Shown here: positions 16,150 to 60,496 of the stretch, in pieces
Position numbering within the stretch: the stretch's first letter is position 1
Layout: each line of letters begins with the position of its first letter
NCBI RefSeq assembly: GCF_006345805.1
Contig: NC_043005.1
Span: forward strand, 86,490,001-86,554,000
Reading direction: 5' to 3'
From: Octopus sinensis
Lineage: Eukaryota
Length of the DNA stretch: 64,000 nt
The notes under the pieces: generated by a model
What the model saw: only the letters and a program-made list of their open reading frames with translations
Told to the model about the DNA's origin: nothing
Database searches by the model: none
Program-made: the position numbers and the translations under genes

Positions 16150-16578
16150 CTTTTATTCGTTTATTTGCTTCAGTCCTTTGACTGCAGCCATGCTGGAGCA
16201 ACGACTTGAAGGGTTTTATTCGAACAAATCGACATGAAGAATTATTATTTAAAGCTTAGTACTTATCCTTTCGGTGTATTTTGCCGAACTCCTATGTTAC
16301 GGGGATGCAAACACACTAGTACCGGTTGTCAAGCAATGATAGAGGACAAACGCATGCACAAACAAACATGTACATACATACATACACACACATATATGTA
16401 TATTGCATATACATATACGACGGTATTCTTTCAGTTTCCTCTACCAAATCCTCTCACAAGGCTTCGGTCCGCCCGAGGCTATGGTAGAAGACACTTGCCT
16501 AAGCTATCCAGAAGTGGGACTGAACTCGCCACCATGTGGCTGGGGAGCAAGCTGCTAACCACAAGGTTACACCTGCAC
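16150..16578 (-). mobile_element. SINE family C (tRNA-like head, central TA/TG microsatellite)
   Basis: Reverse complement matches the intact copy at 52115-52510. Confidence 0.85.
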
Positions 16579-18389: not shown

Positions 18390-19200
18390 TACAAGTGAGT
18401 GTCAAAATTTATATTCACTTGTTTTTTCAGAGTATTTATACAAAAGCAGGGGATTTTCTATATAGTCATTTTTCTATATAGTCTCCTTCCTTTCCAAGGT
18501 TCTTCGTCCAGCGGTCCACAAGCTTGCGTATTCCCTCCTAAGAAGAAGGTTTTCGGTTGGTCGTGCAACCATTTATGCACCGCTTCCTTCATTCGTAAGA
18601 AATCGACGACGTCGTAAAGCATTTTTGAGCGGTCTAAAGATATGATAAACGGGGTGAGATTTGGAGTGAACGCAGGATGTTCCAGCACCTCAAAACCGAA
18701 TTAGTTAATCGTTTCAACAGTCTGGGCGGCCGTCTGTGTTTGTGCACTGTCATGCAACAGCAAAGCATTTTTCGACCGCAAACTTCGGCGTTTGGTACGA
18801 ATTGCTGGCTTCAGTTTATTGGCCAGAAAAGAATTAATCTTTGCACTGATGATCGTACATCCCTTTTCGAGATTGTATTCCAGTATAAGCCTTTTTGAGT
18901 CCCCAAGATGAGTTCGCATTACCCTTCCCAGGGAAGGCTGAGCCTTAAATTTCTTCGTCGCTGTCGAGCCAGAATGTTTCCTCTCCATAATCTGTATTTT
19001 AGGTTCTGCCACGTAATGATGAATCCACGTTCCATCTCCTGTGACTGCTGTTTTTCTTTTGTTTTTTCTTTGGTGCACACTGCTTGCGGAGCAGCCATAC
19101 TTACACTGTAATGCCAGAAAGAAAATTGGCGCGATCAGGCTCAACCTTCGATCAGTAACAACAATATCAGCAGTAAATGTCGAACGACGAGAATGAGTGC
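18390..19200 (-). pseudogene. Fossil mariner transposase (mariner/Mos1-like catalytic domain)
   Basis: VTGDGTWIHHY..EPK..KKFKAQPSLGRVM..LLLHDSAQTQTA and LEHPAFTPNLTP..KEAVHKWLHDQPKTFF; TIR-like TACAAGTGAGTGTCAAAATTT at 18390; stops, frameshifts and an internal deletion. Confidence 0.9.
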
Positions 19201-19519
19201 TCAAAACCATATTAGTGTACAGATTCTCTTTATTATAGTGTTAAAGCTACCATTGGTTTCTTGTTAAGAAAAATATTTTAATACCTTAAAAAATTTTCAC
19301 GCTTATCACAAGAAGGACTGGTGCTTGTCTCCTTTTCGGATGAAAACATGAATTCTCGAGAATTTGCAGAAAGTCTCGTAAAGAAAACGATAAACCCAGA
19401 GTTACTACCCTTGGATATGTATATCCGACAATGTATTCTTTTATGATTTCAATTGCTTCCGTCATTAGATTGAAGAATTTTAGTGGGATAAAATGACACC
19501 ATTACTTCTCTAAATTTTT

Positions 19520-44860: not shown

Positions 44861-45184
44861 TGTTTCTCACTCACTTTTCTCTCTCTCTCTTTCTGTCTTA
44901 CTTCTCTGAAACATTTAAAAAGACAAAATGAATGCCTTCACCACTCACTGTTTTACTCTCTCTCTCATTCTCTCTCTTTTTTCTCTTCTCTGAAGCATTT
45001 AAAAAGACAAAACGAACGCCGTCCCAACTCACGGTCTCTTTCACTCTCTCTGTCTTTCTCTCTCATTCTCTCTCTCCCTCTTTCACTCTTACTTCCTCTC
45101 TGTCCTCCTCTCTCGCTTTGCCACTTCTTCGAAGTGCGACACACGCCACAGGTACGTACAAAACAAAAAAAATTTATACTTTTG

Positions 45185-45398
45185 TTCTTTTATTTGTTTC
45201 AGTCGTTTGAGAGCAGCCATGCTGGAGCAACGCCTTTTAGTCGAGCAAATCGACCCCAATAATTATTTTTTCTAAGCTTAGTTCTTATTCTATCGTTCTC
45301 TTCGTCGAACCGCTAAGCTGCGGGAACCTAAATACACCAGCATCGGTTATCAAGCGATGGTGGGGGGACAAAGAAAAACACGCGCACACGCACGCACG

Positions 45399-45447
<49 letters not shown>

Positions 45448-45583
45448 CCAAATCCATTCTCAAGGCTTTGGTTGGCCCGAGGCAATAGTTGAAGACACTT
45501 GCTCATGGTGCCACGCAGTGGGACTGCACCAGGAACCATGTGGTTGGTAAGTAAGCTACTTGTCGCAAGCCACTGCTGCGCCT
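45185..45583 (-). mobile_element. SINE family C
   Basis: Reverse complement matches 52115-52510. Confidence 0.9.
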
Positions 45584-45926
45584 ATGCATACTCCGTGCAT
45601 ATTTCATACTTTATGCATATTTCGAGTCCATGTCTTTTAACATTATTGACATAAACATCAAACTACAAAAGAACTCAGGTCAACTGCACCAATAAGGAAG
45701 AATCGAGGGTCTAAAATTTGGCAGAATCGTTTCGACAATCTACGATCTGAGTTCAAATACTGGCGACGTCAACTTTGTAGCTGCCTTGCGATATTCGTTT
45801 CGATGCTCAGCTTTTAGAGTTCATTTCCATCGAGGAAGCCGCAAGGACATCGGGGTTGCTGCTTTACGTTATTTCTTCCCAGTCCAAATCTTATCATATT
45901 GTACTCAGGTGATAGACATGAGTGAA

Positions 45927-46299: not shown

Positions 46300-46534
46300 T
46301 GACACTCCGCAGGTGGTGACGATGGGGGTTCGAGTTGATCTGCTCAATGGAACAACCTACTAGTGAAATTCACGTGCAAGTGGCTGAGTACTCCACAGAC
46401 ACGTGTACCCTCAATGTAATCCTCAGGGAGATTCGGCGTGACACAGATAGTGACAAGGCTGATCCCTTTGAAATACAGGCACAACAGAAACAGGAAGAAA
46501 GAGTGAGAGAAAGTTGTTATGGAGTACAGCAGGG
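46300..46534 (-). mobile_element. SINE family D 3' half
   Basis: Reverse complement matches 28690-28920. Confidence 0.85.
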
Positions 46535-46850
46535 TTCTTCTTTCTTCCTTACCGCATAACTTTTTGTCAGCTGGGCATGCTATATCTATGATTCTGCATA
46601 GTTTGTTATCTTTCTCAATTAAGACTATGTCTGGCTTCCTATTCTCTATCTCATGGTCACAGGGAATCAAAAAATCCCACAGGATCTTTGCATTATCATT
46701 TCCGATGATGCCTTCGGGTTTGTGGTCGTACCAATTCTTTGCTCTGTCATGTCCATGCTTATTGCAGAGCGTCCAATGGACAAGCCTGGCTATAATGTAG
46801 GGGTGTCTCTTATATTCCTTCTGGGCTAGTGGCGTACATTGGCTGGTAAC
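46535..46850 (-). mobile_element. R4/Dong-like LINE fragment
   Basis: SQCTPLAQKEYKRH..IARLVHWTLCNK..NAKILWDF.IPCDHEIENRKPDIVLIEKDNKLCRIIDIACPAD (PD-(D/E)xK type RLE). Confidence 0.85.
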
Positions 46851-46876
46851 ATGAAAATTACGATTTCAATTTATTA

Positions 46877-47499: not shown

Positions 47500-47677
47500 C
47501 ATGGATTGGCTCTGCGGTAAGTAGCTTGCTTACCAGCCATATGGTTCCTGGTTAAGTCCCACTGCGTGGCACCTTCGGCAAGTGTCTTCTACTATAGCCT
47601 CGGGCCGACCAAAACATTGTGAGTGGATTTGATAGACGGAAACTTAAAGAAGTCCTTCGTATATATATATATATATA
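47500..47677 (+). mobile_element. SINE family C 5' half (3' half at 49984-50238)
   Basis: Matches 52120-52290; ends in the central (TA)n. Confidence 0.85.
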
Positions 47678-47744
47678 TTGATAAAACGGTAAGATAACAA
47701 AAGAAAGAAAGAGACCTCAATATTATGTAAATAGAGGAAATAGA

Positions 47745-47937
47745 TTTTTGGCCAGATGTAAGCCCTATACTAAGGGCAGCCGGAAGGTGCGGTCTATGCG
47801 ACATGGAGAGATGGCTTATCTGGAAAAGCAGCTTAGACCCTACTACATGCATAAATACAAGGACAGAGCTTTTCGGATCATGCCCACATGTGACTAAATT
47901 TCTGTTACGTTTTTGGTCCCCTAAAGAAAATAGATAG
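47745..47937 (+). pseudogene. Penelope-like element GIY-YIG endonuclease C-terminus
   Basis: FLARCKPYTKGSRK/(+1 frameshift)CGLCDMERWLIWKSSLDPTTCINTRTELFGSCPHVTKFLL* matches the PLE pattern PY..GSKRCxLCxxEK..I..LNxRxEl..CxH.xKFLL. Confidence 0.8.
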
Positions 47938-48131
47938 AACATGCTTTCTATGTTATGTCCCAAGAAGAATTTATATATTTTTATATATTTTTTTAAATAT
48001 TTTTTATGTATTTTTATATAATTTTTATGACGAAAAATGCGAGCGATGTATAAGTACGCAGGCAAGCAGAGTTATAACAGAGTAATTTCCCCTTATTTAA
48101 CGGTATTTTTTCATAACGTTTTCAAATAGCC

Positions 48132-48194
48132 AGATAACCGAAGAGATGATGTTGTGGATTTCCACTTCGGCATCTGAAACTCAGAGTTTTATCT
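48132..48194 (+). ncRNA. Type I hammerhead-like motif in PLE 3' region (U4C core)
   Basis: AGATAA-CCGAAGA-GATG..CATC-T-GAAAC-TC A GA-GTT-TTATCT; 6-bp stem I, stem III ACTC/GAGT. Confidence 0.55.
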
Positions 48195-48216
48195 TGACTA
48201 CCGAGTAATGTAACAT

Positions 48217-48269
<53 letters not shown>

Positions 48270-48498
48270 ATATATATATTAAAATTACTAAGTCTCTCTA
48301 AAAGAGAACAACGGCAGCGTTCCCGGAAAATATTAGTTATCGCCATACTAATATGGCATTCTTATAAAAATAAGAATAAAGCTGTCCGCTTATTAGCTCC
48401 ATGAGGCCATCGCCTTAAGTTAACTATTTGATACACAAACTGTATCCATATAACCTTTGAACAAGGGAGGTCAGTCGCTCCACACTACTTGGCCGGCA

Positions 48499-48540
48499 GC
48501 TACAGACGCGTTTCGGGGTATTGCCCCTTTTCAATGCAGC
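48499..48540 (-). ncRNA. Type I hammerhead ribozyme (U3-A8 core), inverted copy
   Basis: Exact reverse complement of 49016-49057. Confidence 0.8.
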
Positions 48541-49015
48541 GTAGCCAGACCAGTAGGTGTCGCTTCTGACAATCTCTGTTCAAAGGTTTTATTTACCTAG
48601 CTTCGGTGGAATACATCCACTTGTTTTCAATAATATAAATATTAAAATTACTAAGTCTCTCTAAAAGAGAACAACGGCAGCGTTCCCGGAAAATATTAGT
48701 TATCGCCATATTAATATGGCATTCTTATAAAAATAAGAATAAAGCTGTCCGCTTATTAGCTCCAAATAGCTAACTTAAGGCGATGGCCTCATGGAGCTAA
48801 TAAGCGGACAGCTTTATTCTTATTTTTATAAGAATGCCATATTAGTATGGCGATAACTAATATTTTCCGGGAACGCTGCCGTTGTTCTCTTTTAGAGAGA
48901 CTTAGTAATTTTAATATTTATATTATTGAAAACAAGTGGATGTATTCCACCGAAGCTAGGTAAATAAAACCTTTGAACAGAGATTGTCAGAAGCGACACC
49001 TACTGGTCTGGCTAC

Positions 49016-49057
49016 GCTGCATTGAAAAGGGGCAATACCCCGAAACGCGTCTGTAGC
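49016..49057 (+). ncRNA. Type I hammerhead ribozyme (U3-A8 core)
   Basis: GCTGCA-TTGAAAA-GGGG caata CCCC-GAAAC-GC-GTC-TGTAGC; 6-bp stem I, 4-bp stem II, palindromic ACGCGT stem III, predicted cleavage after C49051. Confidence 0.8.
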
Positions 49058-49378
49058 TGCCGGCCAAGTAGTGTGGAGCGACTGACCTCCCTTGTTCAAA
49101 GGTTATATGGATACAGTTTGTGTATCAAATAGCTAACTTAAGGCGATGGCCTCATGGAGCTAATAAGCGGACAGCTTTATTCTTATTTTTATAAGAATGC
49201 CATACTAGTATGGCGATAACTAATATTTTCCGGGAACCCTGCCGTTGTTCTCTTTTAGAGAGACTTAGTAATTTTGATATTTATATTATTGAAAACAAGT
49301 GGATGTATTCCACCGAAGCTAGGTAAATAAAACCTTTGAACAGAGATTGTCAGAAGCGACACCTACTGGTCTGGCTAC

Positions 49379-49420
49379 GCTGCATTGAAAAGGGGCAATA
49401 CCCCGAAACGCGTCTGTAGC
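49379..49420 (+). ncRNA. Type I hammerhead ribozyme (U3-A8 core)
   Basis: Identical to 49016-49057. Confidence 0.8.
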
Positions 49421-49741
49421 TGCCGGCCAAGTAGTGTGGAGCGACTGACCTCCCTTGTTCAAAGGTTATATGGATACAGTTTGTGTATCAAATAGCTAAC
49501 TTAAGGCGATGGCCTCATGGAGCTAATAAGCGGACAGCTTTATTCTTATTTTTATAAGAATGCCATATTAGTATGGCGATAACTAATATTTTCCGGGAAC
49601 CCTGCCGTTGTTCTCTTTTAGAGAGACTTAGTAATTTTAATATTTATATTATTGAAAACAAGTGGATGTATTCCACCGAAGCTAGGTAAATAAAACCTTT
49701 GAACAGAGATTGTCAGAAGCGACACCTATTGGTCTGACTAC

Positions 49742-49783
49742 GCTGCATTGAAAAGGGGCAATACCCCGAAACGCGTCTGTAGC
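49742..49783 (+). ncRNA. Type I hammerhead ribozyme (U3-A8 core)
   Basis: Identical to 49016-49057. Confidence 0.8.
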
Positions 49784-49945
49784 TGCCGGCCAAGTAGTGT
49801 GGAGCGACTGACCTCCCTTGTTCAAAGGTTATATGGATACAGTTTGTGTATCAAATAGCTAACTTAAGGCGATGGCCTCATGGAGCTAATAAGCGGACAG
49901 CTTTATTCTTATTTTTATAAGAATGCCATATTAGTATGGCGATAA

Positions 49946-49983
<38 letters not shown>

Positions 49984-50020
<37 letters not shown>

Positions 50021-50238
50021 TTGTGTGACTGTTTTTCCCCCCACATCGCTTGACAACAGATGCTGGTGAGTTTACGACGTCGTCACTTAGTGATTCGACA
50101 AAAGATACCGATAGCATGAGTACAAGGCTTACAAAGAATAAGCCCTGTGGTAGATTTGCTCGAATATCGGCGGTGCTCCAGCATGGTCGCAGTCAAATAA
50201 ATGAAACAAATAAAAGAAAAGAAAAGAAAAGTAAAGAG
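49984..50238 (+). mobile_element. SINE family C 3' half
   Basis: (TG)n then CGCTTGACAACAGATGCTGGTG..GGCGGTGCTCCAGCATGG..GAAACAAATAAAAGA matches 52300-52510. Confidence 0.85.
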
Positions 50239-50477
50239 TTAACTCCATCAGAGTTACTTCTGTCTCTCTAATAACTCCCAGTGCCATCATCCTCATTGTC
50301 ATCTTTATCATCTTCTTTAATATCATCATTTTCATACTCATCCTTCTAACCACCATCATCATCATCGTCTATGTCCTCCTCCTCATTCTCATTCTCACCA
50401 TCATGATCACTATCACCTTCCCCGTCGTCATCAGAGTTATTATCGTCAACACCACCACCACCATAACCATCACCACC

Positions 50478-51309: not shown

Positions 51310-52005
51310 GCACAGCTTCTAATGCTGGAGATGTACTACAGTGTCAGCTGTTCAATACCAGTAGACTAAAGTATTATTTTTCGAGGATTCCTGTGTATTC
51401 GAACTGTTCCAAGCAGTGTTGTTTTCTGCAAGTGCTCCACCCTTATTGCAGCCCCTATATGTTCCATGTACTTATTAAGATTTTTACTCTCTATTCCCAG
51501 TGCTCTGACAATTATTGGTACTACTACCGCCTGTTTCAACGACCACAACTGCTGAACCTCCCGAGCTAACCTGTCATATCTCACGACTTTTCTTTCTTCC
51601 TTATCGCATACCTTGTTGTCAGCTGGGTTTGTTGTATCTATGATCCAGTATAGTTTGTTTTCTTTCTCAATTAAGACTATATCTGGCTTCCTATTCTCTG
51701 TCTCATGGTCGCACTGAATCATAAAATCCCATAGGATCTTTGCATTTTTATTTTTGACAATGTCTTCAGGTTTGTGTACGTACTAATTTTTAGCTCTGTT
51801 AAATCCATACTTGTTGCAAAGTGTTCAATGGACAAACCTGGCTATGTTGTCGTGGCGTCTCTTATATTCCTTCTGGGCTAGTGGCGTACATTGGCTGGTA
51901 ATATGCCATACGGCTTCACCGTTTTGTCCACAGATTCTGTATTTATCACTTTCTGCTGTGTTGTCTATTCTGTATTTTATGTAGTATGTTCAGGGAAATT
52001 GCTCT
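51310..52005 (-). mobile_element. 5'-truncated R4/Dong-like LINE (zinc knuckle, RLE, 3' UTR) flanked by (TAA)n on both sides
   Basis: ICGQNGEAVWHITSQCTPLAQKEYKRRHDNIARFVH..ILWDFMIQCDHETENRKPDIVLIEKENK..LGTVRI; (ATT)n at 51232-51309 and 52006-52098. Confidence 0.9.
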
Positions 52006-52099: not shown

Positions 52100-52114
52100 C
52101 ATCATCATCGTCAT

Positions 52115-52510
52115 AGGCGCAGGAGTGGCTGTGTGGTAAGTAGCTTGCTAACCAATCACATGGTTCCAGGTTCAGTCCCACTGCGTGGCATCTTGGGCAA
52201 GTGTCTTCTGCTATAGCCCCGGGCCGACCAATGCCTTGTGAGTGGATCTGGTAGACGGAAACTGAAAGAAGCCTGTCGTATATATGTATATATATATATG
52301 TGTGTGTCTGTGTTTGTCCCCCTAGCATTGCTTGACAACCGATGCTGGTGTGTTTACATCCCTGTTACTTAGCGGTTCGGCAAAAGAGACCGATAAAATA
52401 AGTACTGGGCTTACAAAAAATAAGTCTCGGGGTCGATTTGCTCGACTAAAAGGCGGTGCTCCAGCATGGCCGCAGTCAAATGACTGAAACAAGTAAAAGA
52501 GTAAAAGAGT
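52115..52510 (+). mobile_element. SINE family C, intact reference copy
   Basis: Head GGCGCAGGAGTGGCTGTGTGGTAAG, GGTTCAGTCCC box, central TA/TG tract, tail GAAACAAGTAAAAGAGTAAAAGA. Confidence 0.92.
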
Positions 52511-52519
52511 AAGAGTAAA

Positions 52520-53430
52520 GAGTATCATCATCACCATCATCATCACCATCACTACCACCACCACCACAACCACCACTACCACCACCACCACCACCACCGT
52601 CATCCTCCACCCCTCCCCTCCCCCTCCTCCTCCCCCTCCCCCTCCTCCTCCTCCTCCTCAGCATCATTATTATTATTGTTGTTATTGATAATTTCGTTGT
52701 GTCGATAACAATATTGATGATGACTATTACGATCGCCACCAACGTCATGTGGGGTAAGAAACTGCCTTCTGGACCATGTGGTCTTTAGTTCAGCCCCTCT
52801 GTGCGATATTTTGGTGAAATGTAATATCTTGAAGTCCCAGGCCGACCGAATCTTCGTAATGAGTGGATTTTTGCTTCACAGAAACTGAAAGAAGTCCATC
52901 GTATATGCGTGTGTGTGTGTGTGTTTGTATGAGTGTTCGTCACACTATAGCCCTTGACAACCTGTGTTGGTTTGTTTACGTCCTTCGACAGTTAAAAGTA
53001 ACCAACAGAATAAGTATCAGAGTTAAAAATTAAGTACAGGAGGCGTTTTGTTTACGTAAACCATTGTGAAAGGTGGTACAGCATGTCCGCATTCTAAAGA
53101 CTAAAACACATATCATGATCATGATCATCATCATCATCATCGTCATCATCATCATCATCATCACCATCAACATCTTCATCATTATCTTCATCATCACCAT
53201 CATCATTATCAACATCACCACCATCATCATCACTACCAGCACCACCATCATCATCATCACCACCACTGCCATCACCATCATCTTCATCATCATCATCACC
53301 AGCATCACAATTATCATCATCATCATCATCACCTCCACCACCACCAACACCACCACCACCACCACCACAACCACCACCACCACCACCATCACCACCATCA
53401 TCATCATCATCGACGGCACCATCACTCACA
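52520..53430. repeat. Cryptic (CAT/CAC)n triplet repeats around a degenerate SINE C (52750-53040)
   Basis: Direct reading. Confidence 0.85.
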
Positions 53431-54444: not shown

Positions 54445-54481
<37 letters not shown>

Positions 54482-54762
54482 CTATTGAAAAGGTTGCAAG
54501 ACGCAACGAAAAGTTTAGAAAACTAAAATAGTAACAAGTGGGAATTTTACTGGTAAGTGTGTTACATAATAAGGTACAAAAAGAAAATGACTCTCCCTAG
54601 ACATAACAGTATATATAAACCATGCGCACCAAAAAATATATATATAAAGTAACAAAGTGAGGAAATGAGAGGGTATGTTAAGCATCCAATTCACTGGTAC
54701 ATCAGTTGGATACCGTATAAATATTGGTATAATGCAATTATAAAGATATAATAAATATAGGG

Positions 54763-59997: not shown

Positions 59998-60496
59998 GCC
60001 TGCGTTCAAGTATTATGTGCGCTTGTGTTAGTGAGGAAGTGTACATGATAGTGTTTGGTGTGTGTACTGACTTAAAGTGTGTGTGGCTGCTCATATAGTG
60101 GAATATGTGGTGATGCTATTGAAGCTTGAGTATGGGTGTGTGGATAATGGTGTGTGGTGTGGGTGGTGGGAAGTGGTCATTGCTAGTGTGTGTGGAGTGA
60201 TGTGGGGTGGGTATCAAATGAAGAGAGGAGGTGAGACTGGTGTCAGATGAAGAGAGGAGGTGCGTTGAGGTCATGTGGGGCAAAGAAACGAAGAGAGAAG
60301 ATTAATTTCTGTTATATTATTCTATTATTTTACATGTTGCATTCAATTTACTGCCGCCATGCTGGAGCAACGTCTTAATTTTGCGAATAAAGGGTTCAAC
60401 GTTGGTTCTATGTCAGCATGTGTATATAAGAAATTTTGCGGAATAAGATAAAAAAAACCAAGGCTGTGTAGATACTAGAGCATTTATAGATAAAAT

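Follow-up and report, generated by a model that had tools for sequence, protein, structure and literature searches.

What is the 363-bp tandem repeat that occupies positions 48267–49952 of a 64,000-nucleotide stretch of Octopus sinensis DNA (NCBI RefSeq assembly GCF_006345805.1, contig NC_043005.1, positions 86,490,001 to 86,554,000 of the forward strand), and how did it come to lie there? A first reading of the letters, made without database searches (the sequence-only reading), had called it a recently inserted non-long-terminal-repeat (non-LTR) retrozyme. We analysed the whole stretch, which is referred to as the window and numbered from its first letter. The locus is likely to be a young insertion of such a retrozyme, i.e. 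of a non-coding, non-autonomous retroelement with a 363-nt unit and one type I hammerhead ribozyme, the core of which carries a U3-A8 pair.

Non-LTR retrozymes are described as tandem units of 150–450 bp with a type I hammerhead in each unit, a GC content below 45%, no coding capacity and a highly self-paired RNA (PMC7229834). Every one of these features that can be checked on sequence is present in the array or predicted for its RNA: tandem units of 363 bp, a type I hammerhead in each, a monomer GC content of 41.3%, no coding capacity and a folding z-score of −6.45. Together with a palindromic helix III that would permit dimeric action, they support the assignment made by the sequence-only reading.

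Array architecture and the type I hammerhead

Tandem Repeats Finder (TRF) reports a period of 363 bp over 48763–49952, in 3.3 copies with 99% matches and no indels, while a repeat search shows 48267–48764 to be the reverse complement of the same repeat, with the same 363-bp spacing. The array of about 4.6 monomers described earlier is thus right as to its period; its supposed head-to-tail arrangement is not, as the 4.65 units are divided over two arms of opposite orientation. Numbering the monomer from the predicted cleavage site (49052–49414 being positions 1–363), the plus arm (48763–49952, plus strand) contains 3.28 units, running from monomer position 75 to 175, with three ribozymes and two complete cleavage-to-cleavage units. 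The minus arm (48267–48764, minus strand) is 5'-truncated and contains 1.37 units, running from position 104 to 363 and on from 1 to about 238, with one ribozyme. The arms are arranged head-to-head, their 5' ends meeting at 48763/48764 and their 3' ends facing outwards into (TA)n. At the inversion junction (48763–48791), the two nucleotides CA at 48763–48764 are common to both arms, and the next 27 nt (48765–48791) belong to the plus arm and have no counterpart in the minus arm. The whole can be described as an inverted repeat of 48267–48764 with 48792–49289, with arms of 498 nt, 99% complementarity and a 27-nt spacer. The left boundary of the array is ambiguous within about 48263–48279, because the monomer is AT-rich there.

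As the sequence-only reading had noted, the copies differ by few substitutions; eight monomer positions are variable (82, 154, 157, 187, 225, 230, 315 and 323). The minus arm shows five mismatches in 485 nt with the mirrored plus arm, and its variants at positions 82 and 157 are private. At position 187, the two units of the minus arm and the first plus unit have G, but plus units 2 and 3 have C; plus unit 2 differs from the minus arm at four positions. No open reading frame (ORF) is present in the array, also as noted before; in a trimer, no frame is free of stop codons over more than 51 amino acids. A homology search with the seven longest stop-free monomer translations, concatenated, gave no match, nor did an exact look-up of two array pseudo-ORFs (47 and 38 amino acids) in an assembly index, and a repeat search of the array revealed no terminal repeats beyond the units themselves. 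A classical satellite would be a large homogeneous head-to-tail block; here there are only these few units, in two orientations, inside another repeat (see below).

Read-through across the inversion junction (48267–49289) would give a hairpin RNA with a near-perfect stem of about 498 bp, on which small-RNA or editing pathways aimed at the retrozyme family could plausibly act. The tip of this hairpin also produced the best Rfam match at E ≤ 10, to mir-965 at 48729–48827 (34.3 bits, cutoff 43), which was rejected on that account. The other sub-threshold Rfam matches to small RNAs and microRNAs, all located on the same hairpin or on (TA)n, were likewise rejected.

The plus arm contains three putative hammerheads, at 49005–49065, 49368–49428 and 49731–49791, with predicted cleavage between 49051 and 49052, 49414 and 49415, and 49777 and 49778, respectively. 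The first was assigned by descriptor match, comparison with the N79 ribozyme and folding. A fourth, in the minus arm, spans 48491–48551 on the minus strand, its core to C17 corresponding to 48534–48505. The second is identical to the first and the third has an identical core. A 30-nt string from the core to the cleavage site is found exactly at 49022–49051, 49385–49414 and 49748–49777 on the plus strand and at 48505–48534 on the minus strand, and nowhere else in the 64 kb. The third hammerhead has two private substitutions, C to T at 49729 and G to A at 49737; the latter disrupts a G-C pair in distal stem I, so that this copy may act less strongly as a ribozyme than the first two hammerheads of the plus strand. 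The minus arm, having only one ribozyme, would be unable to release a unit-length RNA.

In the first hammerhead, the six base pairs of helix I are formed by GCUGCA (49016–49021) and UGUAGC (49052–49057), and distal stem I carries a UAC bulge (49013–49015), making the internal loop of helix I UAC/U. The core UUGAAAA (49022–49028) is followed by the four base pairs of helix II, which starts with a G-C pair (GGGG/CCCC, 49029–49032 and 49038–49041) and is closed by the loop CAAUA. Then come GAA (49042–49044), the palindrome ACGCGU (49045–49050) and C17 (49051), the last residue of a GUC cleavage triplet. The layout is that of a three-helix type I hammerhead, with an open helix I, the G10.1-C11.1 pair, and a helix III of 2 bp, or of 6 bp in a dimer. 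Aligned to the consensus C3 U4 G5 A6 N7 G8 A9, the core reads U3 U4 G5 A6 A7 A8 A9. The remaining consensus positions (G12 A13 A14, A15.1-U16.1 and H17) all fit, so that C3 to U and G8 to A are the sole mismatches. As C3 and G8 pair with each other in the active structure, the two changes are compensatory and, judging from the alignment, the core is a U3-A8 covariant of the canonical C3-G8 pair. One type I hammerhead per monomer had been claimed before and is indeed found at all four sites; that its core is a variant rather than the canonical one had been overlooked. U3-A8 covariation occurs in several natural hammerheads, and such cores have already been shown to be active in vitro (Perreault et al. 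2011, PMC3088659). About 1,300 U3-A8 motifs are tied to Penelope-like elements (PLEs) in Schistosoma mansoni (Cervera and de la Pena 2014, PMC4209133).

A generic type I descriptor that accepts either core pair gives four matches in the window, all of them the array sites. Random controls, comprising 200 sequences of 64 kb and 20,000 sequences of 726 nt with the dinucleotide statistics of the monomer, gave none. This descriptor was composed after the motif had been seen, and the four sites, all derived from one event, do not count as independent occurrences. Scans with the ribozyme core, leaving loop 2 free, gave no matches in metagenome, viral and prokaryotic genome collections, which contain no animal genomes; a second metagenome scan with the 5' part of the core left free also gave none, and a literature search on 'C3U/G8A' returned no match. 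Elsewhere in the window, a look-alike of a minimal U3-A8 hammerhead is present at 54477–54521 (plus strand), comprising TTGAAAA, a 5-bp hairpin, GAAA and a 6-bp helix I-like complement (GTAAACTATTGAAAAGGTTGCAAGACGCAACGAAAAGTTTAG). It leaves no room for U16.1 and H17 and was rejected as a chance occurrence.

In its dimensions, the hammerhead follows the canonical metazoan type I layout, in which helix I has 6 bp, helix II 4 bp and helix III 1–2 bp capped by a small palindromic loop (PMC4209133). The closest comparison is with the Sm-alpha/Sm1 hammerhead of S. mansoni, from which the N79 ribozyme was engineered (PMC12550524). N79 likewise has a 6-bp helix I, a 4-bp helix II, GAAAC...GUC and C17, and also, at precisely six base pairs from the core, the UAC bulge of the 5' strand with one U facing it in the 3' strand. 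Its loop 2 (CAAAUA) is one nucleotide longer than CAAUA. The octopus hammerhead differs from Sm1 and N79 in its U3-A8 core pair, in the unrelated, but still paired, sequences of helices I and II, and in the element that carries it.

A helix III of 2 bp with a 2-nt loop could not form within one molecule; the ACGCGU sequence, however, is palindromic, and dimeric action is therefore proposed. Palindromic helix III sequences and dimeric action are known from newt, axolotl and PLE hammerheads (PMC4209133, PMC7229834). Two 64-nt hammerhead segments are predicted to co-fold at −56.9 kcal/mol, compared to −50.8 kcal/mol for two separate monomers (2 × −25.4). The predicted co-fold is a double hammerhead with an intermolecular 6-bp helix III, helix I in trans and a local helix II. 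In the unconstrained minimum free energy (MFE) structure of a 451-nt transcript with two ribozymes (48990–49440), the two palindromes also pair with each other to give a double hammerhead.

Cleavage at successive GUC sites would release RNAs of 363 nt, as the sequence-only reading had predicted for 49052–49414; a second unit, 49415–49777, is defined in the same way. The linear unit-length RNA has a predicted MFE of −123.8 kcal/mol, the z-score of which was given above (none of 100 shuffled sequences folded as well), and helices I and II are kept in this structure. The z-score of its complement is −6.19, and the MFE of the circular form is −118.8 kcal/mol. RNA-seq reads over the GUC/UGUAGC junction, proposed earlier as a check, cannot separate circles from multimeric transcripts, because the junction is already present in the genomic tandem.

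Insertion site

Both outer ends of the array abut microsatellite sequence. On the left, the 3' end of the minus arm is adjacent to a (TA)n tract at 48221–48266, with a boundary that is ambiguous up to 48279; on the right, the 3' end of the plus arm is adjacent to (AT)18(TG)22 at 49953–50027. The (TA)n tracts that had been reported on the two sides are confirmed by TRF at 48221–48279 and 49949–49984, the right one continuing into (TG)22. Further out are the two halves of a short interspersed nuclear element (SINE)-like repeat, both on the plus strand and 2.35 kb apart. The left half (47503–47679) ends in internal (TA)n (47652–47679) and is 87% identical to 52122–52297, and the right half (50028–50240) is 81% identical to 52311–52523.

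The complete copy at 52122–52523 (plus strand) has an uninterrupted (TA)n(TG)n and is collinear with the joined flanks of the array, making it a paralogous 'empty site'. When the joined flanks are compared with 52110–52530, they align end to end with 82% identity over 417 columns, and the sole large gap reflects microsatellite length. Further SINE-like copies are located at about 45179–45586, about 16156–16400 and 60320–60372, all on the minus strand; the microsatellite is uninterrupted in the first two of these, as it is in 52122–52523. Since paralogous copies carry an uninterrupted microsatellite and the joined flanks align end to end, the array is, on this comparison, an insertion into the internal (TA)n(TG)n of a SINE-like repeat. 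The collinearity extends upstream, where 46538–46853 matches 51590–51905 with 85% identity, which makes it probable that the 52-kb locus arose by an old segmental duplication; it serves as the paralogous empty site. The insertion would be much younger than the duplication, because its arms are 99% identical compared to 82% for the two target copies. The words 'inserted' and 'recent' in the earlier description are both supported by these comparisons.

In the SINE-like family, the head looks tRNA-like, the (TA)n(TG)n microsatellite is internal, and the right half is conserved (…GGCGGTGCTCCAGCATGG(C/T)CGCAGTCAAAT…). ARAGORN found no tRNA in the window, leaving the head unconfirmed as tRNA-derived. 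We presume that the repeat corresponds to an abundant octopus repeat, which it resembles.

Between the left SINE half and the array, separated from the latter by 59 bp of (TA)n, lies a block of 541 bp (47680–48220; 35% GC) enclosed by two (TA)n tracts and absent from the paralogous SINE copies. Neither a Pfam family nor a protein homologue was obtained for it, and it is similar neither to the monomer nor to any other part of the window. The block seems to have entered this microsatellite in a second and independent event, suggesting that the (TA)n is a hotspot of insertion.

Proposed mode of insertion and rival explanations

The following sequence of events can be proposed. The plus strand would be transcribed through at least two units, and adjacent hammerheads would pair via their ACGCGU palindromes, forming the double hammerhead and cleaving after GUC, i.e. 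after C49051, C49414 and C49777. The double hammerhead is predicted in silico, and cleavage is inferred because U3-A8 cores have documented activity. A Penelope-like reverse transcriptase (RT) with its GIY-YIG endonuclease could then copy the RNA into the (TA)n target, the two DNA ends priming on AU-rich stretches of the RNA. The outer 3' ends of the array indeed fall in two AU runs with alternating UA, UAAUAUUUU at monomer positions 170–178 and AUAUUUAUAUUAUU at 226–239, for which the predicted probability of being unpaired in the circle is 0.86 and 0.51, respectively, compared to a mean of 0.38. cDNAs longer than a single unit would be made, and two of them would be joined head to head at the 2-nt CA microhomology. 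These last steps are suggested by the architecture, which is most simply read as twin priming, with reverse transcription primed by the target at both ends of a broken (TA)n tract. The single rolling-circle cDNA envisaged in the sequence-only reading is insufficient, because the structure is head-to-head and not a plain tandem; it requires either twin priming or fold-back.

According to Craig et al. 2021 (PMC8557442), PLEs insert as partial tandems with strong 5' truncation, frequently next to an inverted copy that is 5'-truncated as well; they are biased to microsatellites, above all (TA)n, which makes target-site duplications indiscernible. All of these features are present at the octopus locus without an RT or endonuclease ORF, as would be expected of a non-autonomous passenger; a 30–40-bp 'tail', in contrast to PLE insertions, was not recognised. 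As for the ribozymes, PLE hammerheads, including the U3-A8 family of the S. mansoni Cercyon elements, likewise combine U3-A8 pairs with a dimeric mode and tandem or inverted insertions (PMC4209133). They differ in being mostly minimal, without helix III or loop-loop contacts, and in residing in the pseudo-LTRs of RT-encoding elements, whereas the octopus hammerhead is full-size and belongs to a non-coding 363-bp repeat. With the metazoan non-LTR retrozymes of coral, mussel, and axolotl and newt (satellite 2; PMC7229834), the array shares tandem units of a few hundred bp with one type I hammerhead each, a low GC content, the lack of ORFs and apparently of LTRs, a highly self-paired predicted RNA and, with those of newt and axolotl, a helix III that is weak and palindromic, so that cleavage would require a dimer. 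Those retrozymes have a C3-G8 pair; the octopus locus has U3-A8 and a target defined as (TA)n, and clearly shows a twin arm lying head-to-head.

Several observations weigh against a recently inserted, functional retrozyme. Neither the whole window searched with the Rfam hammerhead models at the gathering score nor the 1.8 kb of 48200–50000 searched at E ≤ 10 gave a match; we attribute this to the U3-A8 core, which makes standard models miss these hammerheads. The window contains no other copy of the monomer, the sequence evidence comes from a single locus, and a target-site duplication is unreadable in the microsatellite. No RT or GIY-YIG endonuclease family was detected among the 16 ORFs and stop-free translations scanned, a selection smaller than a full six-frame translation. 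The variation between units (G or C at position 187, and positions 154 and 225 in unit 2) does not by itself fit copying from one homogeneous circle: three units have G at position 187 and two adjacent units have C. To account for it, one has to assume later mutation, a switch of templates or templates that were heterogeneous, and heterogeneous retrozyme RNA populations have been reported in mussels (PMC7229834). Fold-back of a single cDNA could also yield an inverted repeat with a short spacer. It predicts a minus arm that exactly mirrors plus units 1 and 2 and is therefore disfavoured by the four differences with unit 2. Finally, the head-to-head arm could result from misassembly.

This last point concerns the architecture of the locus and not the identity of the element. 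A palindromic chimeric long read could turn a simple tandem into an inverted repeat of 498 nt that is almost perfect and has a short spacer, and such structures have been noted to trouble assembly (Craig et al. 2021, PMC8557442). Such an artefact would not explain the differences between the arms (5 of 485 positions, including the private variants 82 and 157 of the minus arm), nor that the outer end of the minus arm joins a (TA)n continuous with unique flanking sequence, and we regard it as very improbable. It is unlikely that the repeat is a fossil, derived from a retrozyme or a PLE-related sequence but with a U3-A8 core that is catalytically dead or nearly so, and that the locus is now just a small minisatellite containing something that resembles a hammerhead. 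Two normally invariant positions of the core deviate from the consensus, no Rfam model matches it, variant hammerheads associated with PLEs cleave poorly in vitro (PMC4209133), and the third plus copy already has a mismatch in distal stem I. In addition, the identity of the four copies is uninformative on selection, as they come from one event. The two changes, however, form an exact compensatory pair, while the other core positions and all three helices are intact; in vitro activity and repeated natural occurrence are documented for U3-A8 cores (PMC3088659), and a young, twin-armed insertion of more than one unit implies an RNA template that was active recently.

The same resemblance to PLEs that supports the proposed mechanism might indicate that the array is a solo terminal piece of an autonomous PLE, i.e. 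a pseudo-LTR with its hammerhead, left as a heavily 5'-truncated tandem and inverted copy. PLE insertions have this form and favour (TA)n (PMC8557442), PLE pseudo-LTRs bear type I hammerheads, U3-A8 variants included (PMC4209133), and a 2026 preprint derives retrozymes from pseudo-LTRs. More than three units of equal length, each with a full-size hammerhead of canonical architecture, are the pattern of a retrozyme, though, and PLE hammerheads mostly are minimal and lack helix III and loop-loop contacts (PMC7761336). With both ends abutting microsatellite, no RT or endonuclease ORF adjoining the array, and thus no RT and GIY-YIG ORF between pseudo-LTRs as in an autonomous PLE, this origin seems improbable. 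A viroid-like or delta-like circular RNA replicon of exogenous origin, endogenised as cDNA, would share the small size, the single hammerhead, the compact fold and the multimeric cDNA. It would be hard to reconcile with a ribozyme in one polarity only, with a hammerhead architecture typical of animal genomic repeats and with the lack of matches in viral or metagenome collections, and is barely credible.

A young retrozyme insertion thus remains our preferred reading. A more far-reaching version of it is conceivable, but we hold it only tentatively and consider it doubtful as a whole: a fresh integration by twin priming, by a Penelope-like RT and GIY-YIG endonuclease acting on accessible AU-rich loops of a circular RNA, which would show the way in which the RNA of non-LTR retrozymes enters DNA, and belonging to a whole lineage of full-size U3-A8 retrozymes that standard detectors systematically miss and that is possibly the first in cephalopods.

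Neighbouring sequence and implications

The window is 36% GC and very rich in microsatellites and low-complexity sequence ((TA)n, (TG)n, (CAT)n, (TTA)n and (TAG)n), most of its long ORFs being translated repeats. Two ORF remnants on the minus strand, 46347–46865 and 51369–51782, are related (85% DNA identity over 316 bp) and share the motif …NAKILWDF…CDHE.ENRKPDIVLIEK.NKL..IID…PAD…. Pfam gave no significant family for either; the motif seems to resemble the C-terminal region of some invertebrate retroelement ORFs. As each remnant lies upstream of a SINE-like copy, 46.5–50.2 kb and 51.6–52.5 kb look like an old segmental duplication. At 18704–19240 (minus strand) there is a remnant of a mariner/SETMAR-like transposase, homologues of which carry PF01359 (Transposase_1). 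Its best matches, from a JGI metagenome and a Logan contig, are 63–69% identical, and spider and Octopus sinensis proteins are 43–45% identical; an exact look-up of this ORF in the assembly index gave no match.

The locus illustrates a known animal family well and is not a new kind of element, and what is known of the kind is unchanged by it. According to a review, no motif in the repeats of non-LTR retrozymes indicates by which element they are mobilised (PMC7761336). The young insertion described here has readable junctions, and its (TA)n target, inverted 5'-truncated arm and AU-rich 3' ends correspond to the published PLE signature, supporting a link to PLEs independently of phylogeny. Retrozyme-like repeats have been reported 'from molluscs to arthropods', and the retrozyme literature examined makes no mention of a cephalopod example of non-LTR retrozymes; a cephalopod host, if true, would add a clade to their known distribution. 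From its sequence, a full-size animal hammerhead of canonical architecture can apparently bear a U3-A8 core and so escape Rfam and probably also canonical descriptors, and surveys of retrozymes may therefore under-count such families.

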